A stretch of DNA of 64,000 nt from the IMG/VR virus record IMGVR_UViG_3300024239_000011, positions 479,036 to 543,035 of that record. The stretch is one strand, 5' to 3'. Both the position numbers and the translations under genes were made by a program. Shown here one piece after another: positions 15,942-55,820 of the stretch. Within the stretch, counting starts at the first letter, position 1. Each line of letters begins with the position of its first letter. The notes beneath the pieces are model-generated. The model saw only the letters and a program-made list of their open reading frames with translations, searched no databases and was not told the DNA's origin.

Positions 15942-16460
15942 ATGAAGATGATCGAGCTATTCGAGTATACAGTTGATGGTTTCGTGATCCAAAATAGCGC
16001 GAGCATGATCACACCGGCTGGTGAAGTCATACCGTGTGATTTCGCTGGGCACAGTGATACCGTGGTACATTGGATGGAAGTTAATGATCCAGACACTCTA
16101 GCACAGTGGATCAACGATGGGATTGTTGGCTGGACTGCCGTTAATGGGCACAAAACTGTAAGTGATGAGCAAAAAGTGATGGAAGCAGCCATTCTACATG
16201 GGTGGGTACGGTATTACTTTAGCGGCAAGGTCAATGATTGGGACGAATTTATTCTTCGTTATGTCAGAAATGCTCGTTATCTGGTAGGTTTTACATGTTC
16301 CCCCTCCCACCTCAATGGGAATACTGCTACTGCTTGCTTTCGATTATTAACAAATTTGCAGAAGATGCAGCCGATTGCAGTGGAATTGGGCGGATATACA
16401 GAGTCGTCATATTCGGTGGTACCGTACCGGAAGGCGGTGGAATTCTTCCGATCAATATGA
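15942..16460 (+). CDS. Putative capsid-packaged protein (MKMIELFE N-terminus)
   Basis: Late box directly upstream; Alt-like N-terminus; distant paralog of 55365-55820. Confidence 0.6.
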   Translation: MKMIELFEYTVDGFVIQNSASMITPAGEVIPCDFAGHSDTVVHWMEVNDPDTLAQWINDGIVGWTAVNGHKTVSDEQKVMEAAILHGWVRYYFSGKVNDWDEFILRYVRNARYLVGFTCSPSHLNGNTATACFRLLTNLQKMQPIAVELGGYTESSYSVVPYRKAVEFFRSI

Positions 16461-16472
16461 CTTTTATGCGGT

Positions 16473-16480
16473 TATAAATA
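16473..16480 (+). promoter_or_regulatory. T4-late consensus promoter TATAAATA
   Basis: Exact match upstream of the ORF at 16527. Confidence 0.7.
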
Positions 16481-16526
16481 CCTCCACACACAGGGAGTAA
16501 TTCCACACACATCACCGGAGGTAATT

Positions 16527-17531
16527 ATGACGGATAACCCGTTTTCGATTCGTTTTTCCTGTCTTGAACTTGCTCTAAAGTCGTCCATCGACCCAGAGAA
16601 TGTGCTTCTCACCGCCACCAAATACTACAATTTCGTCAATGGTGATTTTACTTCCATTCCTGAATTGTCAGACAAAGTGAAGTTAGTTCAGCGCGAAAAC
16701 TCTCCCAACCTTTCCAAGGTGTCGGTCCAAATCCGTGACACTGGTTACGAAACCACAGTGCTTGAGCGTATTCGCAAGGCACCGGAGCGCAAGATTTTTG
16801 CCATCGATTTGGAAGACAAGTCTCCTGAAGACATTGTTGAAGCTCTTGAGGAATACAAATCCAAGTTCGAAACGTTGATTGAACTCAAGGCCATGAAGAA
16901 GCTTGCTGGTGTTAGCGAAGACATCGACCTAGATGCGCTCTCGCCAACAGATGATAGTCCAACCCTTTGTGAGTTTAATCGTGCAGAAGTTCTCGAAATG
17001 AAGAACCTACGCAACCTTGTTGCCGATGAGTCAACGGCGGAAAATGAAGAACTTGCCAACGCGATCACCAAACTGAAAGCGTCGATCAATTACAAACCGA
17101 AATTTGGTGGTAAGATCACCAATCCCATCGAAACTTTGTTCCGCGCTGCTGATACCAAGATCGCTGAAGTAGCAGAAGATGGCGAAAGCATCAATGCCAC
17201 CCTACAGTACGCAGTGGATAAAGCGATCAATGAAGCTGCTCGTGTATTGATCGTGGCTAAGGTAGATCAAATCATGGTGCCAATGTCGGTTATTCTAGCA
17301 CTAGATCACGCAGCATTGGGTACCAAGAGCATCAATCCGGATAATGGCATGGCAATGTTCTCGTTCTTGTCAGGTGGGTATGTGGAGATTCGTGAAAGCG
17401 TTGATCCGGAAACTGAAAATCTTGCACCGTATGATTATTTGGTTATGCGGGGGACGATGGGTAGTCAGTCACCGAAAGATTATAATGGGCGTACCATATA
17501 TTTGGTACGGGATGCTTCTCCACGAGCATAA
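16527..17531 (+). CDS. Hypothetical late protein
   Basis: 334 aa, RBS GGAGG, own late promoter and terminator. Confidence 0.75.
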   Translation: MTDNPFSIRFSCLELALKSSIDPENVLLTATKYYNFVNGDFTSIPELSDKVKLVQRENSPNLSKVSVQIRDTGYETTVLERIRKAPERKIFAIDLEDKSPEDIVEALEEYKSKFETLIELKAMKKLAGVSEDIDLDALSPTDDSPTLCEFNRAEVLEMKNLRNLVADESTAENEELANAITKLKASINYKPKFGGKITNPIETLFRAADTKIAEVAEDGESINATLQYAVDKAINEAARVLIVAKVDQIMVPMSVILALDHAALGTKSINPDNGMAMFSFLSGGYVEIRESVDPETENLAPYDYLVMRGTMGSQSPKDYNGRTIYLVRDASPRA

Positions 17532-17537
17532 ACCAAC

Positions 17538-17568
17538 GGGGCGGGAGAACTCTCGCCCCTTCTTCTTT
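17538..17568 (+). terminator. Rho-independent terminator
   Basis: GGGGCGGGAG/CTCTCGCCCC stem followed by a T-rich tract. Confidence 0.65.
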
Positions 17569-17603
17569 CCGCTAAATACCCTGGAATCAAACCAGGGGGC
17601 AGC

Positions 17604-18497
17604 ATGGCTTTGCAAAATATTGTTGGGGAGTTGAACCCCTATATCGAAAATGGTGTGCAAATCGAAGAAACGTTTGGTAAGTACAAAACAAAATTACTTC
17701 GTTCCGATAATGACCATTTTACGTTTGATTTTTATCCATCATTTGATGAATTATCAGTATATTACGATCAGGTTTACCCGAATACTGGGGGTCGCCCATT
17801 CTGGTATAATGCCGATAACAATTATGCAGATGAACGATGGGTTGGGGTGGTTCCAGCAATTGAACAATGGATTGAACACCACTTCGGTCGCCGCGATATC
17901 ACGATCCATGAGGTTGGGTGCGGTTTTGGTGGGCTTGTCGCCAAGCTTCGATCTTTAGGACTGGATGCTTCCGGTACCGATCTCAACACAAAAGCTATCA
18001 GCGATGGACGCACCCGGAAGGGTAATCAACACATCCATGGTCGAAGTGTATATGAGTTCCTTGCGGAGTATGGCAGTCAGGATATGATCTTGATGCAACA
18101 TTTCCTTGAGCATGTGACTGATCCAGTAGAAATTCTCAAAAATATGAAGGATCATATCAATCCCGGTGGATTGATATTCGGGCGCGTTCCAAATAGCCAA
18201 TTCTACCTAGCGAAACATCGCACTATTCGCTCGCACTGGTATGGATACCCACACCATCTACATTATTTTTCCGCAGCGTCCATTGAGAAAATCCTGACTC
18301 ATTGTGGATATACGGTATTGATGGTTGGCGCGACCGACGCGGAAATGTTTGGTGATCGTCAATGGAAGAAATTCGATGAAATCGAAGAGGTTGCTCGTGA
18401 ACGCGGAGACTGGAATGGGTCATGGGATGATTTGGTAAACCTGCTCATTACGCGAAATGAAGCGAAAGAAGTTCAATTTGTAGCGCGAGTGGACTAA
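17604..18497 (+). CDS. Class I SAM-dependent methyltransferase
   Basis: IHEVGCGFG motif I, HFLEHVTDP, PGGLIFGRVPN; late box 17573-17578. Confidence 0.85.
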   Translation: MALQNIVGELNPYIENGVQIEETFGKYKTKLLRSDNDHFTFDFYPSFDELSVYYDQVYPNTGGRPFWYNADNNYADERWVGVVPAIEQWIEHHFGRRDITIHEVGCGFGGLVAKLRSLGLDASGTDLNTKAISDGRTRKGNQHIHGRSVYEFLAEYGSQDMILMQHFLEHVTDPVEILKNMKDHINPGGLIFGRVPNSQFYLAKHRTIRSHWYGYPHHLHYFSAASIEKILTHCGYTVLMVGATDAEMFGDRQWKKFDEIEEVARERGDWNGSWDDLVNLLITRNEAKEVQFVARVD

Positions 18498-19261
18498 TGC
18501 CAAAAGGATTAATTCAGCCTAAAGACTATGGCGACATCATTGCCTTGCAAGGTATTGCCAATTTTCACGGGGTAACGGCTTGGCCGGTATGTCCTCATGT
18601 AATTGAAGTCTTCCGGCACTTCCCCGATATCGAACCAATCCTATTAGATGGATGTACTGATCTGGCACAACATTACTATCACCAAGCTTATGATGTACTC
18701 GTAAGGCGTGGATTTGATGTGGTTGATACTATGTGGCATGGACGGGCAAATGGGTGGGAACGACAACGTACCGTGGAAGGTCTTAAGAGGTGGCCGCAGC
18801 AAGTTCGCGAGACGCTGTTCGTAGACGAACTCAAGTACCTGATGGCGGAAGTACCGATTGAAGAGAAACATCGGGGTTTCCGGTGGAAGCGTTTCCCAGA
18901 CAAAGAAAATACTTTGCTTGACCATGCTCGACAAATAGCGGGTGGGTCGCGGTATGTAGTGGTTCATCAATATGATAACGATTACAAAAGCGTAATGGCA
19001 GAACCTATTCGTTTGGTAACTGATCTACCCGTTGTCAAGGTCGAAGCCATTCCGGGTTTTACGGTACTGGACTGGTATGCGGTGTTTTGTGAGGCAACTG
19101 AAATCCATATGATTGATAGTGCCCCGGCAAACTTCGTTGAATGTGCTGGTATTGGCGAGGTAAAGCATCTCCACCTCTATGCGCGAAAGAACACACGTCT
19201 ACAACCGAAACAAAAATGGGGGTTCGCGTTCCGGGATGATTGGACAAAGCATTATGCATAG
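18497..19261 (+). CDS. Putative glycosyltransferase-like protein
   Basis: YGDII N-terminal motif and IHMIDSAPANF resemble GT-B fold halves; operonic position. Confidence 0.45.
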   Translation: MPKGLIQPKDYGDIIALQGIANFHGVTAWPVCPHVIEVFRHFPDIEPILLDGCTDLAQHYYHQAYDVLVRRGFDVVDTMWHGRANGWERQRTVEGLKRWPQQVRETLFVDELKYLMAEVPIEEKHRGFRWKRFPDKENTLLDHARQIAGGSRYVVVHQYDNDYKSVMAEPIRLVTDLPVVKVEAIPGFTVLDWYAVFCEATEIHMIDSAPANFVECAGIGEVKHLHLYARKNTRLQPKQKWGFAFRDDWTKHYA

Positions 19262-19272
19262 TGAGGTTGGTC

Positions 19273-21175: not shown

Positions 21176-21176
21176 A

Positions 21177-21818: not shown

Positions 21819-21945
21819 TACTTGACGATCATTTTTGTCTATCGTATATATCGAACCACTATCTCATCATTACCCCCAAATGGGATGGTATGTGTCCCGC
21901 TAGTGGTTCGTTGCTGGCGGGACACAGTTTAACAAAGGACACCCA

Positions 21946-22233
21946 ATGACTGACATTCGCCGCATTATCTTGGAAACGGTTGAATCGCTTGGTGCTATCA
22001 AAGGCATTGAACTTGTCACCCGTGTGACCGTGCGTTTGTGTGAGGATGAACGGAAGGGTGGTGTCACACCGGTAAGTGATGAAATCATTTCCACCCTGAA
22101 CATCATGGTGGCTGCGGGAGATTTGGTGGAAATTGAGTACGTGGTTCCTGGCATGGAATACCGAATCAAGTCGATCTACATGCCCAAGGGCACCCAGGTG
22201 GTCAGCGTCGGCGGAATTGCTGTCCGGGAGTGA
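21946..22233 (+). CDS. Hypothetical early protein
   Basis: sigma70 promoter TTGACG-17-TATATA at 21822-21850; RBS AAGGA. Confidence 0.65.
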   Translation: MTDIRRIILETVESLGAIKGIELVTRVTVRLCEDERKGGVTPVSDEIISTLNIMVAAGDLVEIEYVVPGMEYRIKSIYMPKGTQVVSVGGIAVRE

Positions 22234-22236
22234 CCC

Positions 22237-22632: not shown

Positions 22633-22640
22633 ATGGTAAT

Positions 22641-25623: not shown

Positions 25624-25678
25624 TGGCGACGATCAACGCGGCTGACTGATAAATACCCTAAACATTTTAGGGTGCAAA

Positions 25679-26398
25679 ATGAAAGTCAGCGAGCTAGTTG
25701 GTTCCCAAGAAATCCTCCAATACATCCAGTTCCATGAGGAACTTAATCCTACTCTTTGGGAAAATAAACACCTAAAGCAGGAAGTTCGCGACAAGCTCTT
25801 GGAGATCGCGGACGAGTTCTATGAGTTCCTAGAGCTTCCGAACCTAGAGATCATTGACATCATTTTCTGTGGCTCAAATGCTGCTTTTAATTACAGCAGC
25901 TTATCTGATATCGACTTGCACCTTCTGGTCGATATGAGCAAGATCGACTGTGAGCGATTGGCTGAGAACTTCTTTAACACCAAGAAGACCTTGTGGAACA
26001 AGCTGCACGAAATTGAGATCAATGGGTTCAGTGTCGAACTCTATGTCGAAGACGTGAAGAACCCGGTGAATGCCGCTGGCATCTATAGCGTCAAGCATGA
26101 TCGGTGGAAGAAAGAACCTACCCCGTCGAAGCCGGGTATTGATGACACGTCGTTAGTTTCCAAGACGAATCAATATATCGATGCCATTGATTCGTTGATG
26201 GCATCTGAACCGGCCAAGGGTGAAGTGCGTGCCCTACTGGACGACATTTATGCTCTACGCAAAGCTGGTCTGGAAACCGGTAGTGAATTTTCAATCGAAA
26301 ATCTCACATTCAAAAGTTTGCGCAATCTCGGTTATATGGACAAGTTACGCGGTTATATCATCAAAGCCAGCGACCGGGAAATGTCGATCTACAACTAA
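25679..26398 (+). CDS. Pol-beta-superfamily nucleotidyltransferase
   Basis: GSNAAFNYSSLSDIDLHLL (GS-x10-DxD) and VELYVED; late box 25650-25655; MKVSEL N-terminus. Confidence 0.8.
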   Translation: MKVSELVGSQEILQYIQFHEELNPTLWENKHLKQEVRDKLLEIADEFYEFLELPNLEIIDIIFCGSNAAFNYSSLSDIDLHLLVDMSKIDCERLAENFFNTKKTLWNKLHEIEINGFSVELYVEDVKNPVNAAGIYSVKHDRWKKEPTPSKPGIDDTSLVSKTNQYIDAIDSLMASEPAKGEVRALLDDIYALRKAGLETGSEFSIENLTFKSLRNLGYMDKLRGYIIKASDREMSIYN

Positions 26399-27963: not shown

Positions 27964-28317
27964 ATGTCCGATAATCATTGTCCCGAGTGTAAGACACCCC
28001 TGGATGAAGTTCCTTTCTATGACTGCCGTCGCGCAGAAATGGAAGGGAACATTTTCTTCGTTCGGGAGGATATCGCAATAACCCCGGCAGATGGGATGTG
28101 CATCACCAATCGGTGGTGGGCATTTCACCCGGAAAAGGGGTTGGCGTTTTACTACGTTGCAGACGGGTTCTACGGCACCCCCGAACCGTGCCCGCAGTGC
28201 AATAATGACGAGTCCACGGCACGGAAGCTTATTGCCGATCTTCTTCCCGATCTTCAAGTGAAATTTGTGCCGGTAGTCTTCCTGGCGCATGCCCGTCGTA
28301 TCGCGAGGCAACACTAA
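27964..28317 (+). CDS. Zn-binding hypothetical protein
   Basis: CPEC...PCPQCN. Confidence 0.6.
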   Translation: MSDNHCPECKTPLDEVPFYDCRRAEMEGNIFFVREDIAITPADGMCITNRWWAFHPEKGLAFYYVADGFYGTPEPCPQCNNDESTARKLIADLLPDLQVKFVPVVFLAHARRIARQH

Positions 28318-28325
28318 ATACCAGC

Positions 28326-29018
28326 ATGCTGGTAGAAGAAATTTCCCTGACTGCTGAACATGTAATCACTGCAATTAAACATGATTGCAGTGATTACATT
28401 GCTTTGCTTGCTGCGGGGACACCACCGCTTGTACGCGGTCTGGCTGGCTACACCGTCCCATTCAAACTCAACGAAATTCCCCGTCCGAACCGCGACCGAC
28501 ACGAAGAGAATCTTTGGTTGGAAGTTCTGGCTGACCGGTATCTGACTGAGTTGGGGATTGAAGCTAAGCGTCTGCAAAGTTGGTTCGCCACGTCTGATCA
28601 GAACATGGCAGAGCAATATGCTCGTGATGGTGGATCACTCTATTACGTGTTTCCTAAGAACGGCGTGCCTTATGCTCACACAGATTCTACCTACGATCTC
28701 CACCTCTCCGCAGAGAACTGGGTGTATCAGGATGGGATCGACATTCTCGATGAGAAGGGACTTAGTGAGGGGCGCCTTGCAGCCATGTTGCATGACTGCA
28801 ATGGCGACCTCAGTACGTTTTCAATCTATGTCCGCCATTCCCCACAGGTGATGGCGTTTTTCTATCGCTACTTCTTAGGGCGACGCGGCTTCACTGACCA
28901 GCATTTGCCCCAGGCGATGCAGCGCGGTGTAGAAGTGTGGTTCAAGGGTCCGTATCACATGATTCGGACAGATCAAAACCACATGATGTCGTTGCTTACT
29001 TCCACAGCGGCCAAGTGA
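28326..29018 (+). CDS. Putative ADP-ribosyltransferase-fold protein, capsid-targeting-like N-terminus
   Basis: LVRG...RPNRDR...SWFATSD...YYVFP; late box 28315-28320. Confidence 0.45.
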   Translation: MLVEEISLTAEHVITAIKHDCSDYIALLAAGTPPLVRGLAGYTVPFKLNEIPRPNRDRHEENLWLEVLADRYLTELGIEAKRLQSWFATSDQNMAEQYARDGGSLYYVFPKNGVPYAHTDSTYDLHLSAENWVYQDGIDILDEKGLSEGRLAAMLHDCNGDLSTFSIYVRHSPQVMAFFYRYFLGRRGFTDQHLPQAMQRGVEVWFKGPYHMIRTDQNHMMSLLTSTAAK

Positions 29019-30728: not shown

Positions 30729-31727
30729 CTATGTTTGCTGTTTCTCTGCAATTAGAGCTTTCCAGCGGTCAAACGCCCGAACAATCCCCGTCAGCCCGTG
30801 TTCTTCCTCGCCATTTTTATTACGGTACAAATCCACGAATTGATTCTTGGCAATGTCAAAGTTGTTGCTGCCGTATCCGGCACCTAGGCTTGGACTCGCC
30901 CATCGTACCGTCGCCCGAACTTTTTCCGGGGTAACCGGCGGTGTGGGCATCTTATCGTTAGTTCCCAAACCACGAATACGCTCTGGTTGTTTTGGATTTA
31001 TTTCGTCGGTGAAAATCTTAATGACGATGTACTGGTTATCACCCTCTTCAATACGAACCTGAGATACAATTTGGAATGCATCTGAGTAGCGCAGGCGTTC
31101 CTTTTTTGCTGGTTCAATAGTAACAGTGCCATAATTCTTACCAATTTCTGCTACCTGTTTTGCAACTTCTTGGACTTGGGTATACCCACTTCCTTTGGAA
31201 CGATCCATGCCGATGATATTAATGCAACGTGGATCAAGTACAAGAAGTTGAACCTCAGAAGTATGAATCGACATGGTATCATCAAAGACGGCATCATACC
31301 CCATCGACCGCAGCATCTTGTTGAAAGCTCCGATGATTTTGCCATTACCATTCTCATAAGCAAAATACGCTTGAAGCATACTCCAAACCATATCCACGCG
31401 CTTATGGATGTTCTCTGGTGGATATTGCTTCATGTATGCCGTGTACTTGTTGGTGATCCCCACCGTATCAACAATCGTTTCAAGTTCTTCTTGGGTGATG
31501 CGGGAGAGGTCGAGTATCCGTGCGGTTGGCTTCAACGTCGCACGGAATTTGTAGGGCATTTTGGTCCAATATGAATGAGGTTCAAAATCCGCTGGGAAGA
31601 AATACAGCCCGGCGGGGTCTTGGTGCGACGGATTGGTATTGATTTTCAGTACCGGAATGCGGCTGTAATGCACCCAAACCGACGCCCATTCATCTATACT
31701 TTCATTGAGTATGGCATTTAAAATCAT
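30729..31727 (-). CDS. Putative ART-like domain protein, capsid-targeting-like N-terminus
   Basis: WVHYS...GLYFFP...ARILDL...GYDAVFD; MILNAILNE start. Confidence 0.45.
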   Translation of the reverse strand: MILNAILNESIDEWASVWVHYSRIPVLKINTNPSHQDPAGLYFFPADFEPHSYWTKMPYKFRATLKPTARILDLSRITQEELETIVDTVGITNKYTAYMKQYPPENIHKRVDMVWSMLQAYFAYENGNGKIIGAFNKMLRSMGYDAVFDDTMSIHTSEVQLLVLDPRCINIIGMDRSKGSGYTQVQEVAKQVAEIGKNYGTVTIEPAKKERLRYSDAFQIVSQVRIEEGDNQYIVIKIFTDEINPKQPERIRGLGTNDKMPTPPVTPEKVRATVRWASPSLGAGYGSNNFDIAKNQFVDLYRNKNGEEEHGLTGIVRAFDRWKALIAEKQQT

Positions 31728-32122
31728 GGGATAATTTTCGCCTCGATCAGTTTTGTGTGAAGTTTTGGAAGGTGGCGTTTGACCGATTCAAAATTTTGAA
31801 GTTTGCCCCAAAGTGGATGAGCCTTAACGGATGCCGGTGGTTCGGGAAGTCTTGATTTCGGGAGATCAATCTGCTTGGGGGAATTCAATGGGTTTTGCTT
31901 ATGTGAGAACATTTTAATGATGTATTCCCGTAGCAAACGAAGTTCCCGCACTAACCCTATGAGTTCCTTGATTAAGCTATCGTTCTCACCATGATCTTCC
32001 CGTTGAGCTTCTTTTTTTAATCTTGTTATTACACGGTCGATATATTGGACAACAATTGCAGGGGAATTTGCGGCGTTATTTCCCGTTCCACTATCTTCTT
32101 GAATCAATTCGGTGATTTTCAT
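31724..32122 (-). CDS. Putative capsid-packaged protein (MKITELIQE)
   Basis: Late box 32144-32149; RBS GGAGG. Confidence 0.6.
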   Translation of the reverse strand: MKITELIQEDSGTGNNAANSPAIVVQYIDRVITRLKKEAQREDHGENDSLIKELIGLVRELRLLREYIIKMFSHKQNPLNSPKQIDLPKSRLPEPPASVKAHPLWGKLQNFESVKRHLPKLHTKLIEAKIIP

Positions 32123-32229
32123 GGAACCCTCCCGGTTTTCTTTTATTTAGTTCTCCATTGACATTACCAAGTTGCGCGTTTAGATTGTTTGGTACCTTCA
32201 CGGGTGCTTAGACGACGGAGTATCGAGAC

Positions 32230-40964: not shown

Positions 40965-41728
40965 ATCGCCTTTTTCTCGATTCCGAAGTAGGACCGAAAT
41001 GCGTCCGCAATGGATACATCATTGAGGTGAATTTCGACCGAATTGCCTTTCTGGCTCATGACGGAAACTACCATCCAGTTTCCGCGCCCATTCGCGAGGT
41101 CGATACCGCTGTTGCCTTGCCTCCCGGCGTTCTGACGGAGCCAATCGGTGAAACGATAGGTGTCCTCATAGTTGGTTGTGGGAATCTCGATGAAAATGAG
41201 GTCCACCACGCCCAATTCCGCTTGGATGCCCACGGACTTCAACTTGTCCAGAACGCCTTCCAAACTCCACCAGTCCTTCTTCGGTGTAAATTGGCCACCG
41301 TTGGTCAGGATTTCCTTGGCTTCGGGGATGGTCAGATCATAGGCAGCCCGAAGCGCCTTCATGTTTTCCATGGTCGCTTGCCCGGCTTTGATGAAAACCG
41401 CGTTGGGTGGGACATATTCGACCGGGGCGAAATCTGGATTGCGTGCCAGGAACAGCGCCACTTCGAACCGGCGGGCATAAAGCATGCTTCGCATGGCACA
41501 GTAGCACCCCGGATCGGTCGGGCGCTCATTCCCCATACAGGCACAGGGACCGGGATGGTCCACGTAGTTTGGGAAATTAGGCACGTGCAGGGCTTTTTCA
41601 GCCAGCCGATGCATCAGCGTCTCGACCAATTCGATACGCGGTTGTGCAAGCCCCGCATCGACTTTTGCCTGATGGTTATGCTGATCAACACGCACGAGGT
41701 TTTCCAATGTTTCGATGGACAGGCTCAT
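40961..41728 (-). CDS. Hypothetical protein
   Basis: 255 aa, coupled ORF; CACMG..CYC. Confidence 0.65.
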   Translation of the reverse strand: MSLSIETLENLVRVDQHNHQAKVDAGLAQPRIELVETLMHRLAEKALHVPNFPNYVDHPGPCACMGNERPTDPGCYCAMRSMLYARRFEVALFLARNPDFAPVEYVPPNAVFIKAGQATMENMKALRAAYDLTIPEAKEILTNGGQFTPKKDWWSLEGVLDKLKSVGIQAELGVVDLIFIEIPTTNYEDTYRFTDWLRQNAGRQGNSGIDLANGRGNWMVVSVMSQKGNSVEIHLNDVSIADAFRSYFGIEKKAI

Positions 41729-42480
41729 GGTGTCACCTCGATCATCTTAAGAGCTTCCCGGTCCATTTGTAGGTCTGGGGGATATTCCCAGCGAAGTTGG
41801 TTGATCTGGGCATCCGATAGCTTGTCCCAGCCCGGCATCATCCGCAGTTGGGCTTCCTGCACTGCGCTTTCTTTTGGACAATCTTCCGGACGCGGCGTCT
41901 CCCGGAACATCAAGGCGGTGTAGTAACGATACTTCCGTCCGACCAGTTGGTAGTTCATCAACGTGATTGACGGGTTGGCGAACGTCAGCAGCAGAGAGGA
42001 CAGCCGCTTATCCAGCATGTTGAAAGTCAACACGCGGGTGATCGCGCTAACCGGGATGTCGCCCATATAGGCGCATGTTCCCATGGCGTCCAGCGACTTC
42101 TTCCACGTTTGCTTGTCGGCGTATTCGTAGAGGTTGTCACGGTACCACGCCGTGCGTTGTTCCATTGACCAGTCGAGCGGCAGATCATCGACCGCCACAC
42201 CCCGACGCGGGCGGCTTGTCTGTTCGAGAACATCTTCGTCCGGGACAAACTGCCATGGGTCCAGGCGGTCGGTGTCGATCTCGATAATCGCGGCGGTCGT
42301 GTCTTTTTTGGTCGCGCAGTTGATCGAGAAATAGGGCGCGTAGGCATCGGTCAGGTAGACCGCCTCGCTGTTGCTCATGACAGTGTGCTGCCAGTGACCA
42401 CGCCGTTTCCCACGCGGGGTCAGCCCGTCCTTAAGGATTTTGGGCAGGAAACGTCCTGCGGTACCATGATAGAGCTTCAT
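41725..42480 (-). CDS. Putative ADP-ribosyltransferase-fold protein
   Basis: MKLYHGT...ILKDGLTP...VYLT...IIEID (H-Y type ART-like core). Confidence 0.55.
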   Translation of the reverse strand: MKLYHGTAGRFLPKILKDGLTPRGKRRGHWQHTVMSNSEAVYLTDAYAPYFSINCATKKDTTAAIIEIDTDRLDPWQFVPDEDVLEQTSRPRRGVAVDDLPLDWSMEQRTAWYRDNLYEYADKQTWKKSLDAMGTCAYMGDIPVSAITRVLTFNMLDKRLSSLLLTFANPSITLMNYQLVGRKYRYYTALMFRETPRPEDCPKESAVQEAQLRMMPGWDKLSDAQINQLRWEYPPDLQMDREALKMIEVTP

Positions 42481-45872: not shown

Positions 45873-47276
45873 TCAGTCTTCGTTCTCATTCTCTAGTTTT
45901 TCTACCAGCGAGCCACGCTGAATGGTCGTCTGTTTGATGTCGTTGTAAACTTCATGTTTGGTTATGGTGCCATCCAGACGTACCCACTGCCCGAACGCCA
46001 TTTTCGTGAACGGTTCGGCGGCATCGTAGCTCGCCCACCAAGTCAGGTGGCATCCGTCGCGGGTGACGAACTTCAGCAGGTATTTCGGGAACTGTCCGTC
46101 GAACAGCTTGCGGAAGGTCAGCTTGGCTTCGAAGCCCTGCGACTTCCAGGCATCGCCCTTTTTGACCCACTTCAAACGCTCACCGATCTTACCGATCCAC
46201 TCGGAAGTCTTTTGCGCATTCTTCGCGGCAAGCGCCGCCTCTTTCTTCTTTTCCTGATCGGCGCGGTACCATTCCTGATGCTTCAGGTACGCGGCGATGA
46301 TGTATGCGGCGATACCATAATGCTTCCACTCAAGTGCGTCTTGCTTGGCAATGAGTTGCATGTTGTAGTCGAGGTCTGTCTTCGGCTTGATATTCTTCGC
46401 CCATTCAATGGCGTCCGTCGCCATCTGAATATCTTCGGCGGTCGGATTGACGGCTTTCGCCTTCTCTTCCTTACCGCTCGGGAACATGTTCTGGGTTGCC
46501 CGCACGGACGTGGGCGTATCCGCCAGCAAGCTGTGCTGGAATTTGTATTGCCTAGTCGCTTCGTCAAACGACTTTTCCATGTTCTCGTCGTTTTTCGCGG
46601 CATTCTGCTGAGCCTGCGATTTCGACAGCCAGCCGTGCAAGCGAATCATCGCCGCGACGTGGGTCATGAAGGTGACGAAATCGGTCTTATGCTTCAGATA
46701 CCCACCGCTGCTCATGCTTTCGTCGTCGTCCATTTCCGATTTAAGGTCATGGATATACGAGGCATAGTTCAGCAGCATCTTGGGATCGACGTTCCCCAGA
46801 AAGTCTTTGAGGCATTGACGCCCGATTTGCTTGATTTCCCCGGTCTGGATGTTGCGCAGCAGGAAAGTGTTCGCGCGGTACCGTTTGGCAGCGCAATGGT
46901 CACAATCCGGCGGGCACGTGCGGTATTTGTCCGGGATGTTGGCTTCTTTGCCGGGTACCGTGCGAATGACATTACCGCCGTTGATGTGATCCAGGGAGGC
47001 GAGCAATTCCCAGCCAGCCAGCTTGGGCGATTCGCCTTCGACCTTGACCTTAAACCACAACCGGCTGCGGTTTCTGCCGTCTACTTTCTCGGTGCGCCAT
47101 TCTTCGCCCAGCTTGATCAACTGGATCAGGGGCAGCCCAAGTTTCTTGGCTTTCCGGTTCAGCTTGTCGATGCGGTCGTGCAAACGCCACCAATTCTCAG
47201 CGGGAATCTCACGCTCATTGGTGAGTTCGCCCCCGTGGGAGTTTTGGCTGTCGTCGTTGATTTCATCGATCCGCAT
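45873..47276 (-). CDS. Hypothetical protein with Zn site and C-terminal OB-like region; capsid-targeting-like N-terminus
   Basis: CDHC...CLKDF; MRIDEI; both a late box (47295-47300) and a sigma70 promoter (47346-47318). Confidence 0.75.
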   Translation of the reverse strand: MRIDEINDDSQNSHGGELTNEREIPAENWWRLHDRIDKLNRKAKKLGLPLIQLIKLGEEWRTEKVDGRNRSRLWFKVKVEGESPKLAGWELLASLDHINGGNVIRTVPGKEANIPDKYRTCPPDCDHCAAKRYRANTFLLRNIQTGEIKQIGRQCLKDFLGNVDPKMLLNYASYIHDLKSEMDDDESMSSGGYLKHKTDFVTFMTHVAAMIRLHGWLSKSQAQQNAAKNDENMEKSFDEATRQYKFQHSLLADTPTSVRATQNMFPSGKEEKAKAVNPTAEDIQMATDAIEWAKNIKPKTDLDYNMQLIAKQDALEWKHYGIAAYIIAAYLKHQEWYRADQEKKKEAALAAKNAQKTSEWIGKIGERLKWVKKGDAWKSQGFEAKLTFRKLFDGQFPKYLLKFVTRDGCHLTWWASYDAAEPFTKMAFGQWVRLDGTITKHEVYNDIKQTTIQRGSLVEKLENENED

Positions 47277-47379
47277 GTGAACATCCTTTTGGGATATTTA
47301 TTCCCAGATCGTTAGGCACAATACAACCCAGTGGTTGTTATGTCAAGTAGTGGCAGCGTTATATTTGCTAAATACCTCC

Positions 47380-49072: not shown

Positions 49073-49075
49073 CGA

Positions 49076-49108
49076 AATGGGGAGCCTTTGGCTCCCCATT
49101 CTCTTTTA
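49076..49108. terminator. Bidirectional terminator
   Basis: AATGGGGAGC/GCTCCCCATT. Confidence 0.75.
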
Positions 49109-49690: not shown

Positions 49691-49874
49691 GGTAGCATAT
49701 CTCCTTCGTTGTGCCTGTCATCGTATTTATCTTAGATGGTTTACACTTGTCAACTATCAAGTCCGGTTTGACCCTAGGCACGAAAAAGCCACCAAACCCA
49801 AGGGCTGGGTTTGTCCCTCTTGCGTTTCACCATAAACGGATAAATACTGCTTTAAGATGATTGAGGGCATTAGT

Positions 49875-50411
49875 ATGAAGGTACAAGAGATCATCACTGA
49901 GTGGAGTGGTTCCGGGGCGGTTCCCGCATCTGAAATCCAAGGCGTGCTGAATCTTGCCATGCTTGATGCGGGTGATTTGGTTGTAGTCAGTTGGAAACCA
50001 TTTGTGACCACAGATGGTCATCACGCCCTATACAAGAATCCCACGGTCGATTATCTCGTCAAGGGGTTGGTTGATCGGTTTCTAGGGTCATCGGCGGAAG
50101 ATGTTATGGTGGCATCGACCGTTTGGAGTTCGGACACGTCCGTTCTTGGTATCCTCAAATTCATTCAGCAACATGCCCAGAACAAGAAGGGTATCGATCC
50201 GCGTACCATTCAAGTCAACACTAAAGGTTATTCTATCGATAAGCTGTCAATGTTCTGGTGGAATGGTATCGTTTTTCTGGTGATTAAAGACATCACGGGA
50301 AACCGAATGTATGGCGGACCAAGAGATACCCACTACACGATTTACGCCGCGCCGGATAAAAACTACAAAGCCCCGGCAGTAAATGGCGAAGAAGTACCCG
50401 CTTCATCTTGA
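49875..50411 (+). CDS. Putative capsid-packaged protein (MKVQEIITE)
   Basis: Late box 49841-49846. Confidence 0.6.
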   Translation: MKVQEIITEWSGSGAVPASEIQGVLNLAMLDAGDLVVVSWKPFVTTDGHHALYKNPTVDYLVKGLVDRFLGSSAEDVMVASTVWSSDTSVLGILKFIQQHAQNKKGIDPRTIQVNTKGYSIDKLSMFWWNGIVFLVIKDITGNRMYGGPRDTHYTIYAAPDKNYKAPAVNGEEVPASS

Positions 50412-50469
50412 CAACGGCTGGAAGTTCCCGGTAAGTTAGGACGAATCTACGTCCCATATCGAGGAACTG

Positions 50470-53274
50470 ATGTCCGACAATTTTAACGTCCTGCTGCCGA
50501 AGACTGCTTTCCCACTCCACCGCAAGCCTGCGGATGAGGTGGCAATCCTCGTGCAGATGGAAACTCACCACAAGGACATGAGCCAGGACAGCGTTCAGGA
50601 CGCCCCGGTGTTTGTGTTGCATGATGGACCGCCATATGCAAACGGCGATATCCACATCGGGCATGCGCTGAACAAGATTCTCAAGGACATCGTGGTTCGG
50701 TCGCAATACGCACTCGGGCACAAGATTGATTTTCGCCCTGGTTGGGATTGCCATGGGCTACCTATCGAATGGAAAGTCGAGGAAGAGTGGCGCAAGGCGA
50801 AGAAAGACCCGCGTGCTGACGTGGTGGCTTTTCGTGCCGATTGCCGCGCTTACGCTCAACGTTGGCTCAATATTCAGCGCGAGCAGTTCAAGCGTCTGGG
50901 TGTTGCCGCCAATTGGGACAATCCCTACACAACCATGGCGTATGCGCACGAAGCGCAGATCGTTTCGGAACTGCACACGATTGCCAAGAGTGGCGCATTG
51001 TATCAGGGTTACAAACCCGTTATGTGGTCGCCGGTCGAAAAAACCTCTTTGGCGGAAGCTGAAGTCGAATACGAGAACGTGACCACTACCAGCGCCTATG
51101 TCGCCTTTAAGGTCGATGGCGAGGGAATGACGATCTGTGGTTCGCCCGTCCATATGCTGATCTGGACCACCACCCCGTGGACCCTGCCTGGAAACGAAGC
51201 TGTCGCGTTCTCGCCATCGGTTTATTACACGATGCTTCGCAAGGTCGTGGATGGTGAAACGTCCTACTTCGTCGTGGCGGCTGACCGTGCCGACGAATTG
51301 TGTAAGCTTGGTCTGGACAGATTCGGGGATGACTCGTGGTTGCCAAATTGTGGCTCTTGGTTCCGCGACAATATCAAATTAGTCCACCCGCTGTCTGGTA
51401 AGACCGTGCCTCTACTGCCTGCGGATTTTGTGACCGCCGAAACGGGCACGGGTTTGGTTCATATCGCGCCCGGTCATGGCAAAGATGATTTTGACCTGGG
51501 TCAGCGTCACAACCTCCCGATCTACAGTGTTGTTGATGACAACGGCTGCATGACGGACGCTGCCCCGGAAGGTGTGTGCGGGTTGCACGTCTACAAGGCG
51601 AGCGAAGCCGTGCTGGCGGTATTAGGTGATGCGCTGGTAGCAACCAAGACGCTGACCCATGAATACCCGCATTCCTGGCGGTCGAAGAAGCCGGTGATCT
51701 ATAAGGTCGCCCCGCAGTGGTTCATCCATGTGGGTGACGACCTGAAGGAAACCGTGCGTAAGGAACTGAATAACGTCGAGTTCTTCCCGCCGCAGGGTCG
51801 CAACCGTATCACCTCCATGGTGGAAAGCCGTGGTGACTGGTGTGTGTCGCGTCAGCGCATGTGGGGCGTTCCCATGATGCTGCTGGTCCGTGATGACGGT
51901 AAGTTGATGGGTCATGAACCCGACGACAATGCCTTGTGTCGAGGGATCGAATTCTTTGAGGCGCGAGCTTCGGAGTTCAATGAGTGGGTGGTGGCTCGCA
52001 TCAACGCCGAGGGCTGTGATTGGTGGCTCACCGAGAGCGTCGAAGAAATCACCCATCGCATGAACGTCGAAACTGGCAGCGGGTGGTTCCTGGCGGGTGA
52101 GCATGCTCGGTTCACCAAGGTGACCGACGTGTTGGACGTGTGGTTTGACTCGGGCTGCACCCATGCGTTCGCCATCAAGGATCGGGCAAATCTTTATCTG
52201 GAAGGGTCTGACCAGCATCGTGGTTGGTTCCAGTCCAGCCTTCTGGAGTCGGTGCTGACCACCGGGCGGGCGCCTTACGATGCGCTGCTGACCCACGGTT
52301 TCGTTCTCGACCATAAGGGCGAGAAGATGTCGAAATCCAAGGGTAACGTCGTACATCCCGAAGATGTGATCAAAAAGCACGGTGTTGATGTGCTGCGTCT
52401 ATGGGTTGCCGCGTCCAACTACCATGATGATCTGCGTATCGGTGATCAGATCATGGAACGGGTGGCGGATTCCTATAAGCGCATTCGCAACACCCTGAAA
52501 TGGTTGCTTGGCAATCTGCGAGATCATGACGGTGGGCGTTTCATCCAGTACGACACCCTACCGTCGCTGGAAAAGTACGTCCTGCATCACGTTGTGACGA
52601 CGAACGAAATCGTGAAGAAGGCGTATCGCGAATACGACTTCAACACGGTCTACCGTGCCGTGTACGGGTTCTGCAACGAGGTGCTGTCGTCGCTCTACTT
52701 CGACATCCGTAAGGATCGTCTGTATTGCGACGGTGCGAATGATCCAGCGCGTGAGCAAACTATGGCGGTGTTGGAACTGGTGACCGACAATCTGTTGGGT
52801 TGGTTGGCTCCGATCACGCCGTTTGCCGTTACCGAAGCGACGCCGCTGTTCTATGGCGAGCAGTACGACCAGTCCATCCATCGTTTGGTTGACCTTCCTA
52901 TGGAATGGCAAGATCACGCACTTGCGTCCCATTGGGACATGGCGTTGACGGTGCGTGCGAAGGTTTTGGAGGCGGTTGAACGCAAACGGAAGCCGAAGGA
53001 CGAGCGTGGACCTGATGACATTGGTGCGTCGTTGGAAGCTTCGGTATTCGCAACGCTGAGCCAAAATTACATGGATGCGCTAAAAGACATCGATATGGCG
53101 GAAGTGTGCATCGTGTCGCACTTCGATGTGAACAGGTCGGTAGGTGCGCAGCCCGAAGGCATCGAGATCACAGTCCACCGCGCTAAGGGGCACAAATGTG
53201 CCCGATGCTGGAAGGTGGTTCCGGATATTGAACATCTTTGTGATCGCTGTGCGGCGGTCGAAGGGGAGAATTGA
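50470..53274 (+). CDS. ileS: Isoleucyl-tRNA synthetase (type 1, C-terminal Zn finger)
   Basis: DGPPYANGDIHIGH, GWDCHGLPIE, WTTTPWTL, GTGLVHIAPGHG, DWCVSRQR, EGSDQHRGWF, KMSKS, KCARCW..LCDRC; sigma70 promoter at 50408. Confidence 0.97.
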   Translation: MSDNFNVLLPKTAFPLHRKPADEVAILVQMETHHKDMSQDSVQDAPVFVLHDGPPYANGDIHIGHALNKILKDIVVRSQYALGHKIDFRPGWDCHGLPIEWKVEEEWRKAKKDPRADVVAFRADCRAYAQRWLNIQREQFKRLGVAANWDNPYTTMAYAHEAQIVSELHTIAKSGALYQGYKPVMWSPVEKTSLAEAEVEYENVTTTSAYVAFKVDGEGMTICGSPVHMLIWTTTPWTLPGNEAVAFSPSVYYTMLRKVVDGETSYFVVAADRADELCKLGLDRFGDDSWLPNCGSWFRDNIKLVHPLSGKTVPLLPADFVTAETGTGLVHIAPGHGKDDFDLGQRHNLPIYSVVDDNGCMTDAAPEGVCGLHVYKASEAVLAVLGDALVATKTLTHEYPHSWRSKKPVIYKVAPQWFIHVGDDLKETVRKELNNVEFFPPQGRNRITSMVESRGDWCVSRQRMWGVPMMLLVRDDGKLMGHEPDDNALCRGIEFFEARASEFNEWVVARINAEGCDWWLTESVEEITHRMNVETGSGWFLAGEHARFTKVTDVLDVWFDSGCTHAFAIKDRANLYLEGSDQHRGWFQSSLLESVLTTGRAPYDALLTHGFVLDHKGEKMSKSKGNVVHPEDVIKKHGVDVLRLWVAASNYHDDLRIGDQIMERVADSYKRIRNTLKWLLGNLRDHDGGRFIQYDTLPSLEKYVLHHVVTTNEIVKKAYREYDFNTVYRAVYGFCNEVLSSLYFDIRKDRLYCDGANDPAREQTMAVLELVTDNLLGWLAPITPFAVTEATPLFYGEQYDQSIHRLVDLPMEWQDHALASHWDMALTVRAKVLEAVERKRKPKDERGPDDIGASLEASVFATLSQNYMDALKDIDMAEVCIVSHFDVNRSVGAQPEGIEITVHRAKGHKCARCWKVVPDIEHLCDRCAAVEGEN

Positions 53275-53275
53275 T

Positions 53276-53455
53276 ATGGTCAAGTTTTTGATTGTTGGTT
53301 TGCCGGTGATTCTGGTGTACCTGTTGATTGGCGTGTACATGCAGCGTGGTCAGCAGGTTAAGGTTACCACCATTTTCAAGGTGATCGGTTGGCCGTTCCT
53401 GTTGGCGGACAAGGCGGTGTTGCCTGAAAAGAAGGATAACAAGCCTAATGCCTAG
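53276..53455 (+). CDS. Small membrane protein
   Basis: MVKFLIVGLPVILVYLLIGVY. Confidence 0.55.
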   Translation: MVKFLIVGLPVILVYLLIGVYMQRGQQVKVTTIFKVIGWPFLLADKAVLPEKKDNKPNA

Positions 53456-53993
53456 GGAAGAAATCGTCCTGGCGGACTCTGGTTGGCAACAACTCCGGGT
53501 GATTAATCACCCGGAGGCTGGGGTGGAAAACTATTCTTATTGCCGCGAATCCAAGGCAGGCGGTAAGGGGGTTGCGGTTCTTCCGTTCCGATGGAAGAAA
53601 AACAGCCTACATGCACTGGAATTTCTCATTCGCTCCGAGTTCAACCCGCCGTGGTCTACCGAAGAAAACTTCTGGACATGCGTAACGGGCATGGTCGATC
53701 CTGGCGAAGTACCGGATCATGCGGCAATTCGTGAACTGCTTGAAGAAACCGGCTACGATGCGCCGTGGGAGCAATTCGTACCACTGGGTTGGATGTTCTC
53801 CAATAAAGGGTCCGATACGATCACCCACATGTATGGCGTTGATCTAACGGGGCTGGAAGCTGGTGACATTACGGGCGATGGTTCGTTGCACGAGCAAAAA
53901 GCATTCAATCAGTGGGTTGATGAACGTGAAATGTTCGAGAAGGTTCAGCATGCACTTGTTTTGGCACTTTACGCCAAACTGAAGGCTGCTTAA
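53448..53993 (+). CDS. NUDIX hydrolase
   Basis: GMVDPGEVPDHAAIRELLEETGY Nudix box. Confidence 0.9.
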   Translation: MPREEIVLADSGWQQLRVINHPEAGVENYSYCRESKAGGKGVAVLPFRWKKNSLHALEFLIRSEFNPPWSTEENFWTCVTGMVDPGEVPDHAAIRELLEETGYDAPWEQFVPLGWMFSNKGSDTITHMYGVDLTGLEAGDITGDGSLHEQKAFNQWVDEREMFEKVQHALVLALYAKLKAA

Positions 53994-54012
53994 TTCAGAG
54001 AGGAAAACTGTT

Positions 54013-54258
54013 ATGGGTCTCGTTGATAAGTTGATTAAAGCCGGTGAAATGGTCGTGGATCATGCCGCCGAAAAGGTAAGCGAAGCGGTTGTCGAGGCAG
54101 CCAAGATTGCCGAAGAAGTTGCAAAAACCGCCGAGGAATACGGCGATAAGATTGGGGATGTTGCCATCGAAGTCGCTCAGATGGTGACCGGGAAACCCGC
54201 CGAGGTTGAACCCAGCGAGCAAAAGCCCGACCCCGACGATCAGCCCCCGTCCACCTAA
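54013..54258 (+). CDS. Small acidic hypothetical protein
   Basis: RBS GAGG; AEEVAKTAEE-type helical repeats. Confidence 0.6.
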   Translation: MGLVDKLIKAGEMVVDHAAEKVSEAVVEAAKIAEEVAKTAEEYGDKIGDVAIEVAQMVTGKPAEVEPSEQKPDPDDQPPST

Positions 54259-54336
54259 TAATTCAATCTGATTATTGACTATCCCACTGTTATCGGGTAC
54301 TCTTCAACGAGTAAACCTGTTAGCAGTGGGATAGTC

Positions 54337-54915
54337 ATGTCTGGATTGATTAATGAATTTATTCGTCGCGTGGATGCAGTCAACCCGGACAAAGGGTTGT
54401 TCAACCTCGACCGACGCATCATCAAGATTGGCGAAGAAGCCGGTGAGGTATTCGAGGCATACTTGAATACCACCAGTCAGCGTAACGGTAAGGGTAAGAC
54501 CTGGGCGGACGTACTGGAAGAACTGGTGGATTGTGCCATTGTGGTTGCTGACACCGGCAAAACCCCGGTAACGACTGCCAATCGCGCGTTTTTCGTGGAT
54601 ACCGACCGTATTGATACCGTGACGGTTGGTGCCAACGAAATCACTTCCGGAAGAATTCGCGCCATTTTCACACTGCTTACGCGGGTCAACGATGCATATG
54701 ATTGGGCGTTGGAAGCGGAAGCACTCCCGAACAATACGGGTGGTGCGTGGCGTCACTTCGATACCGAATGCGAGAACCTTTTCATGCACCTTCTGGGGAT
54801 GATTCGTTCCCTCGCTGATGAAGAGGAAATCTTAGCGGAACTCGACCGTAAGTTGCTGAAGTGGGTGACTAATATGAACAAGATGCCCACCAATGAGCGG
54901 GAAAACGATGTATAA
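54337..54915 (+). CDS. MazG-like protein
   Basis: KIGEEAGEVFEAY...LEELVDCAI. Confidence 0.7.
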   Translation: MSGLINEFIRRVDAVNPDKGLFNLDRRIIKIGEEAGEVFEAYLNTTSQRNGKGKTWADVLEELVDCAIVVADTGKTPVTTANRAFFVDTDRIDTVTVGANEITSGRIRAIFTLLTRVNDAYDWALEAEALPNNTGGAWRHFDTECENLFMHLLGMIRSLADEEEILAELDRKLLKWVTNMNKMPTNERENDV

Positions 54916-54927
54916 CGGGAGGATGAC

Positions 54928-55104
54928 ATGACCGAAATTAAAGATGCGACCAATGTCGTTTCCACCACCGTGATAGTTGATACCATTGAGCAGAAAATCG
55001 CATCATGGGTTGAAAAAGGTTGGGCTGTTCTCACCGATGAGTACAACCTAATGATCACCCAGGATGGGATCAGGGCAATGGAGGATGGGCATGCCTTCAC
55101 TTAA
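54928..55104 (+). CDS. Small hypothetical protein (58 aa)
   Basis: RBS GGAGG, MTEIKDAT. Confidence 0.5.
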   Translation: MTEIKDATNVVSTTVIVDTIEQKIASWVEKGWAVLTDEYNLMITQDGIRAMEDGHAFT

Positions 55105-55318
55105 GGACGCCCTGGCAGCGGTGGTGAGGGAAGGATCACTTACCACCGCTCTTCAAGCTCTTGAACTAGTTGAGGCGGTCGCCGCGAGCCTGCATGCGGT
55201 ACGCCATCCTGGGGGAACATGGGATGATGCTTCCATGGAACGTCGGGAAGAATTTCATCGGGATGCATCTATTGCCCTGACCGCGATCCACAAACAGGGC
55301 TACCACCTGACCAAATGA
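55091..55318 (+). CDS. Hypothetical protein
   Basis: RBS GGAGG, MPSLKDAL. Confidence 0.5.
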   Translation: MPSLKDALAAVVREGSLTTALQALELVEAVAASLHAVRHPGGTWDDASMERREEFHRDASIALTAIHKQGYHLTK

Positions 55319-55364
55319 CCGCCTTCAGCCCCTAAATACAAGAAAGTATCTAGGGGCTGATGAT

Positions 55365-55820
55365 ATGCGTATTAGCGAATTATTCGAAGACGACCAGCAG
55401 TCATGGTCGATGAAGATGGTTGCCAATCCAGACCGAATGCCACTTCGGTATTGGTATAACCCATCAACCGACGAAATTCGCGAGCTATCTCCGACAACTG
55501 AACACGCTGCCGATGTGTTGAACAATCCGGACCACTTTCAAGTATCTGGGTTGGGTACGCTTGACCCAACCGAACGTATTACCAGCGGACAACTGCGTAA
55601 GATCGTACAAGTTGCGTTAGATAATGGCTGGGTGCGCGTGATTCGGTTACGCCCGGATACGTCGGTCTATATGATCGAAGGAAACAATCCACGGCATGTT
55701 TTGAAGGCAGCACGGCGTTTTGATAAAGCAGTTCACCCAATCACCCGTTTGACCATTGAAGGGCATAATCTTCGCGATGATGACCTTGCCCTTTATTTGA
55801 AATACGGTCGTCTGAAATAA
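55365..55820 (+). CDS. Putative capsid-packaged protein (MRISELFED)
   Basis: Late box 55333-55338; paralog of 15942-16460. Confidence 0.65.
   Translation: MRISELFEDDQQSWSMKMVANPDRMPLRYWYNPSTDEIRELSPTTEHAADVLNNPDHFQVSGLGTLDPTERITSGQLRKIVQVALDNGWVRVIRLRPDTSVYMIEGNNPRHVLKAARRFDKAVHPITRLTIEGHNLRDDDLALYLKYGRLK

Follow-up and report, generated by a model that had tools for sequence, protein, structure and literature searches.

A short N-terminal tag on unrelated late proteins of a T4-superfamily megaphage: a candidate capsid-targeting signal

Eight late genes in the final 64 kb of a virus record

The 64,000-nucleotide stretch analysed here (hereafter the window) comprises positions 479,036 to 543,035, i.e., the final 64 kb, of the 543,035-bp single-contig virus record IMGVR_UViG_3300024239_000011. 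Dispersed through it are eight genes whose products begin with a similar short N-terminal motif, which the original prediction had likened to the leaders of the phage T4 internal proteins and Alt and had read as the mark of a set of packaged and injected effectors. The record (Joint Genome Institute, JGI 3300024239 Ga0247724_1000001) is contained in public runs from subsurface and soil metagenomes and, judged by its genes, belongs to a phage of the T4 superfamily. By capsid-gene DNA, the nearest named relatives are Sinorhizobium phage Phosso (77%), Agrobacterium phage Atu_ph07, Pseudomonas phage PA5oct and the Rak2-like coliphages, a set known as the “group 2.2” jumbo phages (PMC7824862). A megablast search of 8 kb of the window against named phages returned no match, and a related-locus search of viral contigs with two window proteins, the products of 45873–47276 and 55365 (467 and 151 residues), returned no close relatives. 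For genome-wide comparisons, we called genes over the whole 543,035-bp record with our own dicodon model and obtained 767 genes, at 88% coding.

Re-reading the open reading frames (ORFs) recovered all eight N-termini at their predicted positions, along with the TAAATA boxes that had been reported upstream of seven of them (window coordinates; scores are bits of a position-weight matrix for the motif). The gene at 15942–16460 (+) encodes a 172-residue protein starting MKMIELFEY (12.4 bits), with no match in Pfam or PHROG; its box at 15931–15936 (+) stands 5 nt before the ATG, in the −11/−10 class that lacks Shine-Dalgarno sequences, and none is present upstream of this gene, which is predicted to give a leaderless late mRNA. 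At 25679–26398 (+) lies the gene for a 239-residue nucleotidyltransferase starting MKVSELVGSQE, with a box at 25650–25655 (+; −29). The gene at 28326–29018 (+; 230 residues, MLVEEISLTAE, phrog_11975, 5.1 bits) has its box at 28315–28320 (+; −11) and is likewise predicted to be leaderless. On the opposite strand, 31724–32122 (−) encodes the 132-residue protein MKITELIQEDSG, which starts MKITELIQE (16.1 bits) and has no family match in Pfam or PHROG; its box at 32144–32149 (−; TATTTA on the + strand) is at −27. The stop codon of this gene overlaps, as ATGA, the start of 30729–31727 (−; 332 residues, MILNAILNE, 4.5 bits), which is the one member without a box of its own and is coupled as had been proposed. 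The 467-residue product of 45873–47276 (−; phrog_2319) starts MRIDEI and begins with MRIDEINDDSQNSHGGELTNERE, followed by a conserved body; the box is at 47295–47300 (−; −24). The gene at 49875–50411 (+) encodes the 178-residue protein MKVQEIITEWSG, starting MKVQEIITE (18.4 bits), with a box at 49841–49846 (+; −34); the longest ORF here starts at 49857, and our gene caller also chooses 49875. Finally, 55365–55820 (+) encodes the 151-residue protein MRISELFEDDQQ, starting MRISELFE (18.0 bits), with a box at 55333–55338 (+; −32) and two tagged paralogues elsewhere in the genome (229678 and 443048). Atlas searches with the 49875 and 55365 proteins were uninformative, the former also having no Pfam or PHROG family match, and PDB sequence searches with three window proteins gave nothing useful.

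As a single motif set the eight are uneven: six score well (8.8 to 18.4 bits), whereas 28326 and 30729 are marginal. The prediction had found every member in the window; the set itself, however, is genome-wide and comprises about 32–38 genes. Its description of dispersed late genes agrees with the nine TAAATA-led genes at 22–64 kb of the window, six of which are tagged. Consistent with a late promoter, TAAATA also stands upstream of the window's tail-fibre genes.

A genome-wide peptide tag linked to late promoters

Across the record, the pattern ^M[KR][IVLM].E[LIVM] is found at the start of 28 of the 767 genes, whereas 2000 shuffles of the columns of the real N-termini gave 0.96 on average and 6 at most, and the tag's five residues follow an internal Met in only 2 of 3762 instances. 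A looser form of the tag gives 32 genes in the 543-kb record, and about 32 genes separate cleanly from the rest with the position-weight matrix, which adds four borderline cases (22072 MRLHQIINE, 58535 MDIREILD, 7584 MRYQDLLLE and 196682 MRLVEFE). The consensus of the 32 genes, with counts, is M-[R17 K12]-[I19 L8 V4]-x-[E31]-[I20 L10]-[L/I/F]-x-[E/D]. Glu at position 5 combined with Ile, Leu, Val or Met at position 3 occurs in 31 of the 32 proteins, matching an [LI]-x-E protease site, and 27 have Glu or Asp at position 8 or 9. The tagged proteins have a median length of 209 residues, and most lack a hydrophobic stretch for secretion. Their genes are concentrated at 0–60 kb (15 genes) and 429–543 kb (11 genes) of the record.

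Compared by BLAST without their first 12 residues, the 32 proteins sort into 28 groups, none of which resembles another; there are small paralogous sets, namely three ART (ADP-ribosyltransferase) proteins and three proteins related to 55365. Within the tag, Arg2 is encoded by CGG, CGT, CGC, CGA, AGA and AGG, Ile by ATA, ATT and ATC and Glu by GAA and GAG, and the Lys codon also varies. Conservation therefore acts on the residues, i.e., on the peptide, and not on the bases.

The word TAAATA is not in excess in the record as a whole (314 occurrences versus 304 expected from base composition). On the sense strand 8–60 nt upstream of genes it precedes 154 of them, with two sharp modes of position, at −11 and at about −27 to −40. 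As the original prediction requires, the tag is not equally frequent in non-late genes: TAAATA lies at −60 to −8 of 24 of the 32 tagged genes versus 130 of the 735 others (Fisher p 1e-11, odds ratio 14). Five of the eight box-less tagged genes directly follow a co-oriented tagged late gene (39141, 39564 and 40185 downstream of 40805; 57101 and 58087 downstream of 56553), and one more has TAAATT instead. The record also encodes a gp55-type late sigma factor (258632–259477; phrog_12791 at 3.9e-83, phrog_234 at 1.1e-20); the PHROG profiles detected it, and T4 gp55 as a single-sequence query against the genome gave no match. The promoter pattern thus suggests that the tagged genes would be expressed late, together with head assembly.

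In 19 genes, the TAAATA box stands exactly 5–6 nt before the ATG (−11/−10), and none of these has a Shine-Dalgarno sequence, versus 82 of the 113 genes with a box at −45 to −24. With T4-like spacing the transcript of a close-box gene would begin at the A of the ATG, and we predict that the 19 give leaderless late mRNAs. Boxes of this type in the window are at 15931–15941, 28315–28325, 47369–47379 and 56994–57004. At these two offsets there are none in Phosso or T4 and two, at −11, in PA5oct. A tag or near-tag is present on 9 of the 19.

Cargo, homologues and head machinery

The label nucleotidyltransferase given to 25679 by the original prediction is borne out by both family match (phrog_36119 at 6e-57) and fold: the protein is a Pol-β-fold nucleotidyltransferase with invariant G65, S76, D77 and D79, and its AlphaFold2 (AF2) model (predicted local distance difference test, pLDDT, 93.8) resembles CD-NTases and aminoglycoside nucleotidyltransferases. 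The label ART-like also holds. The 30729 protein looks like an ART of the ART-PolyVal/AcrIF11 type by its atlas match (features score 0.90 with 171 shared; structure template-modelling score, TM, 0.61 by the match), which we take as a lead only; the ARTs of this phage, however, belong to the ART-PolyVal clade and not to the Alt clade. Pfam scans of all the tagged proteins found ART-PolyVal only and no Alt-type/VIP2 ART family, and blastp of the tagged proteins against our own T4 gene calls gave no match. ART-PolyVal has six matches in the record, four of them on tagged proteins: three above the Pfam cut-off (g40805, g142396 and g457940) and a weak one (g57101). The other Pfam domains among the tagged proteins are GNAT (g183675), Amidoligase_2 (g48308) and Glucosaminidase (g122425). 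Such domains occur one to a protein, except in g40805, which combines GNAT with ART-PolyVal, and many tagged proteins have no recognisable enzymatic domain in Pfam or PHROG. ART and GNAT domains are known from polyvalent proteins predicted to be co-injected with phage DNA (PMC7824862; PMC5512222); hence, enzymatic, conflict-type cargo fits the expectation for injected proteins.

Two further genes bear on the ARTs. A fifth ART-PolyVal gene above the cut-off (2.6e-18), at record positions 439447–440067 (−) and outside the window, starts MEMRHLINLVER and has no canonical tag; with TAAATA at −11 it counts as a late, predicted leaderless gene, and it may carry a longer leader of T4 length ending in L-V-E. 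In the window, 41725–42480 (−) encodes a 251-residue protein starting MKLYHGTAGRF, with neither tag nor TAAATA, in which YHGT resembles the H-Y-E ART signature of several tagged proteins.

Comparison with homologues indicates that the tag is an appended, portable module, absent from related proteins elsewhere. The 467-residue protein of 45873–47276 has an OB-fold and a Zn-ribbon (phrog_2319; OB-fold structure matches) and is probably nucleic-acid-binding. About 25 extra N-terminal residues (the tag and an acidic linker) precede its conserved body, which begins near residue 25; in the AF2 model (pLDDT 88), residues 1–16 are disordered and the fold begins at residue 21. The homologue in Aeromonas phage Aeh1 starts with the body and lies behind a sigma70-type TTGACA...TATAAT promoter, and that of Tunturi_5 also lacks the tag. 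Of 37 metagenomic homologues, only five have M[KR]L.E[IV] with an acidic linker (the phage's own, P0136, P0137, P0146 and P0148). The nucleotidyltransferase family has 144 homologues; among the 120 listed, 43 start with M.[ILVMF].[ED][ILVMF]. In the tagged homologues the tag stands 12–25 residues before a conserved LNPxLW block, close to which the others start. The cyanophage and Caulobacter homologues, in S-CRM01 and Cr30, have no clean tag and speak neither for nor against the module.

The tag also recurs on uncultured contigs, and is kept across phages of 33–51% GC. A 251-kb contig (L078) whose nucleotidyltransferase is 65% identical encodes proteins starting MRIKEILTE, MKINELVAA and MKLFEIFLCED, the last being an ART-PolyVal protein with TAAATA at −27. 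Another (L095) has four consecutive tagged genes (MKINEL, MKLTEI, MKLHEI and MKLHEI), the first two behind TAAATA; L094 has the tag-plus-TAAATA arrangement too, and the homologue in L096, which is untagged, lacks TAAATA. A degenerate DNA pattern for the tag proved too unspecific in relatives, its counts being near those of a reversed-pattern control in Phosso, Atu_ph07, Turkey5 and T4; for the counts given below it was replaced by gene calling and N-terminal counts.

The phage has head machinery of the T4 type. A gp23-type major capsid protein (PF07068 at 4.6e-81; record 206039–206749) is encoded beside a gp21-type prohead protease (gene at record 208647–209276; Peptidase_S77 at 7e-24 over 208782–209234) at 206–209 kb, with a coiled-coil scaffold-like gene between the two. 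In T4, internal head proteins enter the scaffold core by means of a capsid-targeting sequence (CTS), and gp21 removes N-terminal propeptides, cutting Alt at ITE-6 (PMC5694885); the internal proteins of T-even phages have been described as diverse defence proteins with the CTS as their only common feature (PMC3012670). T4 gp23 is cut at FLTE65/AE (the slash marks the cut), and the equivalent sites are PILE/NAT in this phage, FLVE/NAS in PA5oct and PLME/TAT in Phosso. With these [IL]xE capsid sites, it is plausible that the protease here has the same specificity, with which I-x-E5 and L-x-E9 of the tag are both consistent. The T4 record gives the leaders MKTYQEFIAE (IPII and IPIII), MKTFKEFTST (IPI), MELITELFDE (Alt) and MAKINELLRE (gp24); those that the original prediction had given for the internal proteins and Alt agree with it. 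The T4 leaders and the present tag have in common E-φ-φ-x-E and an [IL]xE site, the tag being one residue shorter before the first Glu. Elsewhere in the record, far from the head module, there is a second, diverged Peptidase_S77-like gene (133735–134169, −; 144 residues; E 3e-6, below the Pfam cut-off), which recalls the diverged second prohead-protease paralogue described for SPN3US (PMC5694885).

PA5oct provides virion proteomics for a relative. Its gene calls include six strict tag genes versus 0.34 expected, plus gp135 (MHLFELFD). Five of these seven products, gp104, gp105, gp135, gp254 and gp309, with tags such as MRLNEI, MKILEF and MHLFELF, are annotated “structural protein, ESI-MS/MS” (electrospray-ionisation tandem mass spectrometry); tagged gp103 (64 residues) and gp408 are not annotated as virion proteins. 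The PA5oct paper reports 93 virion proteins among 461 coding regions, and 5/7 against this baseline is therefore unlikely by chance (binomial about 0.005, our own calculation). Further, gp135, which has TAAATA at −28, is an orthologue of the tagged g39141, with an alignment that begins at residue 1 (34.5% identity, 3e-22). The text of the PA5oct paper makes no mention of late promoters, a prohead protease or N-terminal processing, and our literature search found no paper pairing “capsid targeting” with Rak2, PA5oct, Atu_ph07 or 121Q.

The record lies within a longer contig, of 869,618 bp, in the European Nucleotide Archive (ENA; ERZ27245855 k141_178484), to which its two ends are 100% identical across 11,467 and 6,784 bp. 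Beyond both ends (L090:11468-18852; L092:6785-12312) the ENA contig continues into new DNA without wrapping to the opposite end, and so the true genome may be about 870 kb. It would then be the largest yet seen; the largest uncultured-phage matches in our phage search were records of 735,411 bp, which 869,618 bp exceeds. The new DNA contains the same TAAATA boxes and two further tagged late genes, one encoding MRIHEILTEADT (TAAATA at −29) and the other a protein starting MRTTEITEEIS (TAAATA at −11) with a faint T7-kinase match. Just past a record end there is also an IS605/TnpB (Cas12f-like) element (L090:17847-18852), two copies of which, about 83% identical, lie within the record at about 61119–62219 and 192043–193153, which indicates a transposon family spreading within the phage genome. 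The window neighbours of the tagged genes 49875 and 55365, at 50470–53274, 53448–53993 and 55876–56457, encode by precomputed Pfam matches a 934-residue class I aminoacyl-tRNA synthetase (tRNA-synt_1 and Anticodon_1), a NUDIX hydrolase and a dCMP/MafB19-type deaminase. Window positions 46399–47025 and 50467–50646 have 100% matches to read-length unitigs from two wastewater metatranscriptome libraries, and so this phage, or a near-identical one, also occurs outside the subsurface samples; these RNA unitigs are few, too thin to inform on transcription or 5′ ends, and may reflect DNA carry-over.

A putative T4-like route for packaging and delivery

The enrichment of the tag, its conservation as a peptide, its modularity, its link to late promoters and the T4-type head machinery are the observations on which our interpretation builds. 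We consider it likely that M-[KR]-[IL]-x-E-[IL]-[ILF]-x-[ED] is a portable tag like the T4 CTS, acting in capsid targeting and as a propeptide, and, with somewhat less assurance, that most of the cargo is delivered to the host and acts there. The computational tests that we ran all agree with a leader of this kind, and the original prediction is supported in part. Under this proposal, the tagged genes would be transcribed late from TAAATA promoters read by the gp55-type sigma factor of the phage, and the tag would carry each protein into the scaffold core of the assembling prohead. There, the T4-type prohead protease would trim the tag after Glu, at I-x-E5 and/or L-x-E9. The mature enzymes would remain in the head and enter the next host with the DNA, to work there in takeover or anti-defence ahead of any phage gene expression; among the cargo would be ADP-ribosyltransferases, acetyltransferases, a nucleotidyltransferase, an amidoligase, a peptidoglycan hydrolase, an OB-fold DNA-binding protein and many unknowns. 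The PA5oct proteome supports the virion location of the tagged proteins indirectly; what we infer is that the tag is cut off, that the proteins are kept in the head and ejected, and that they have the proposed roles in the host.

Several points weigh against this interpretation. The phage is uncultured and is known here from its genes. The strict tag pattern has no match in the T4 gene calls, and the link to T4 is therefore one of analogous architecture, not identity. About a quarter of the tagged proteins lack the acidic residue at position 8 or 9. In Phosso, the nearest isolate by capsid gene, the strict tag genes number only four and none of the tagged cargo has a homologue, and hence the cargo set is lineage-specific and turns over quickly. 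In the mass spectrometry of PA5oct, head and tail proteins are not distinguished, and a general enrichment of virion proteins among late genes bears on its 5/7. A complex prediction of the prohead protease with residues 1–30 of the 55365 protein scored 0.00 and is not evidence either way.

The principal alternative, which we regard as unlikely, is that the tagged proteins are structural or decoration components of the head, tail or fibres, for which the tag would serve as propeptide or assembly signal, and that they remain in the particle and are not delivered as effectors. T4 gp24, a shell protein, has the same kind of leader, the PA5oct data demonstrate presence in the virion only, and for many tagged proteins no enzymatic domain is recognisable. 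Yet what can be recognised of the cargo is enzymatic and of conflict type (ART-PolyVal, GNAT, nucleotidyltransferase and amidoligase), its fast turnover, with none common to Phosso, is unexpected of structural parts, and its homologues in other phages are early or untagged. Slightly less probable still is a destination other than the capsid, such as a phage chaperone or AAA+ unfoldase, a replication or assembly compartment, or timed degradation, which would also account for the late expression. Packaging in this phage is a prediction, and ClpX/ClpA, MoxR and BCS1-like ATPases with no known clients are found in the group 2.2 jumbo phages (PMC7824862). Against such targeting, the tag reproduces the architecture of the T4 CTS with its protease site, tagged PA5oct proteins are found in virions, and most members lack a secretion-type hydrophobic stretch.

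Two other explanations seem to us highly improbable. The motif could be an RNA- or translation-level start signal of late, partly leaderless messages, as its presence in full or near form on nearly half of the predicted leaderless genes and the common A-rich second and third codons might suggest. However, Arg is written as both CGN and AGR and Ile as ATA, ATT and ATC, the tag stands on Shine-Dalgarno-led as well as leaderless genes, 130 other late genes lack it, and it persists over a wide range of GC; the synonymous variation in particular led us to reject this explanation. We give even less credence to the tagged genes being diverged paralogues of one family that inherited its N-terminus. 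The paralogous trios of ARTs and of 55365 relatives speak for such descent, but the tagged proteins differ in Pfam domains and folds, other phages have the same body in both tagged and untagged form, and the 28 unrelated groups led us to reject a single family.

Among known systems, the arrangement appears, in every respect that sequence can test, to work like the T4 CTS. In both, a leader of about 10 residues is the sole feature common to unrelated late proteins, and both have gp21-, gp23- and gp55-type genes, a TAAATA late core and ADP-ribosyltransferases among the cargo. They differ in that the consensus here is one residue shorter (MRIxEILxE versus MKTYQEFIAE), the cargo families number about 32–38, where T4 has roughly half a dozen, the ARTs belong to the ART-PolyVal and not to the Alt R-S-E clade, and many tagged genes form isolated late islands among non-late genes, some of them predicted to be leaderless. 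Polyvalent proteins, which join 2–15 disparate domains in one polypeptide (Iyer et al. 2017, PMC5512222), overlap with the tagged set in their ART-PolyVal, GNAT, nucleotidyltransferase, peptidoglycan hydrolase and DNA-binding modules and in their predicted delivery with the DNA at the first moment of infection. The tagged set has this conflict-type repertoire but not the multi-domain fusion: most of its domains are encoded singly, as proteins with a tag and promoter of their own, and only g40805 joins two domains.

In the phiKZ-like giants (SPN3US and phiKZ), many head-internal proteins are processed after Glu by a gp21-related protease, and a second diverged protease paralogue is present; these, however, are another group of phages, with a virion RNA polymerase and a phage nucleus. 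We know of no short common N-terminal tag described for them. Their cleavage sites are A/S/G-x-E, and their propeptides are long and non-uniform (PMC5694885). The tagged virion proteins of PA5oct, from the same phage supergroup, have the five-residue-to-Glu tag and TAAATA promoters; they differ in that only 6–7 genes are tagged and the tagged virion proteins have no assigned function.

A broader, joint reading, which we advance tentatively and which could as readily fail as hold, is that the portable five-residue-to-Glu tag defines at least 35 separately encoded, packaged and injected proteins in a genome of maybe ~870 kb. Tagged single-domain cargo with its own late promoters, partly leaderless, would here replace the strategy of fused polyvalent proteins. 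The same tag-plus-TAAATA cassette would be in use across many uncultured phages of the T4 superfamily and provide a sequence key to injected anti-defence and takeover proteins.

Injected proteins act before phage gene expression, which makes them prime candidates for counter-defence and takeover; recognising them by sequence is hard, however. If the interpretation is right, the tag marks over 30 such candidates in one megaphage, most of them of no known function. Among the others are acetyltransferases, a nucleotidyltransferase whose fold resembles that of CD-NTases, and several ADP-ribosyltransferases with a relationship to the anti-CRISPR AcrIF11 family. The combination of tag and TAAATA would be a simple, testable rule for mining other huge phages, and the short peptide could be used to load foreign proteins into jumbo-phage capsids such as that of PA5oct. 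It would also mean that the cargo-loading principle of T4 scales to the largest known phage heads.

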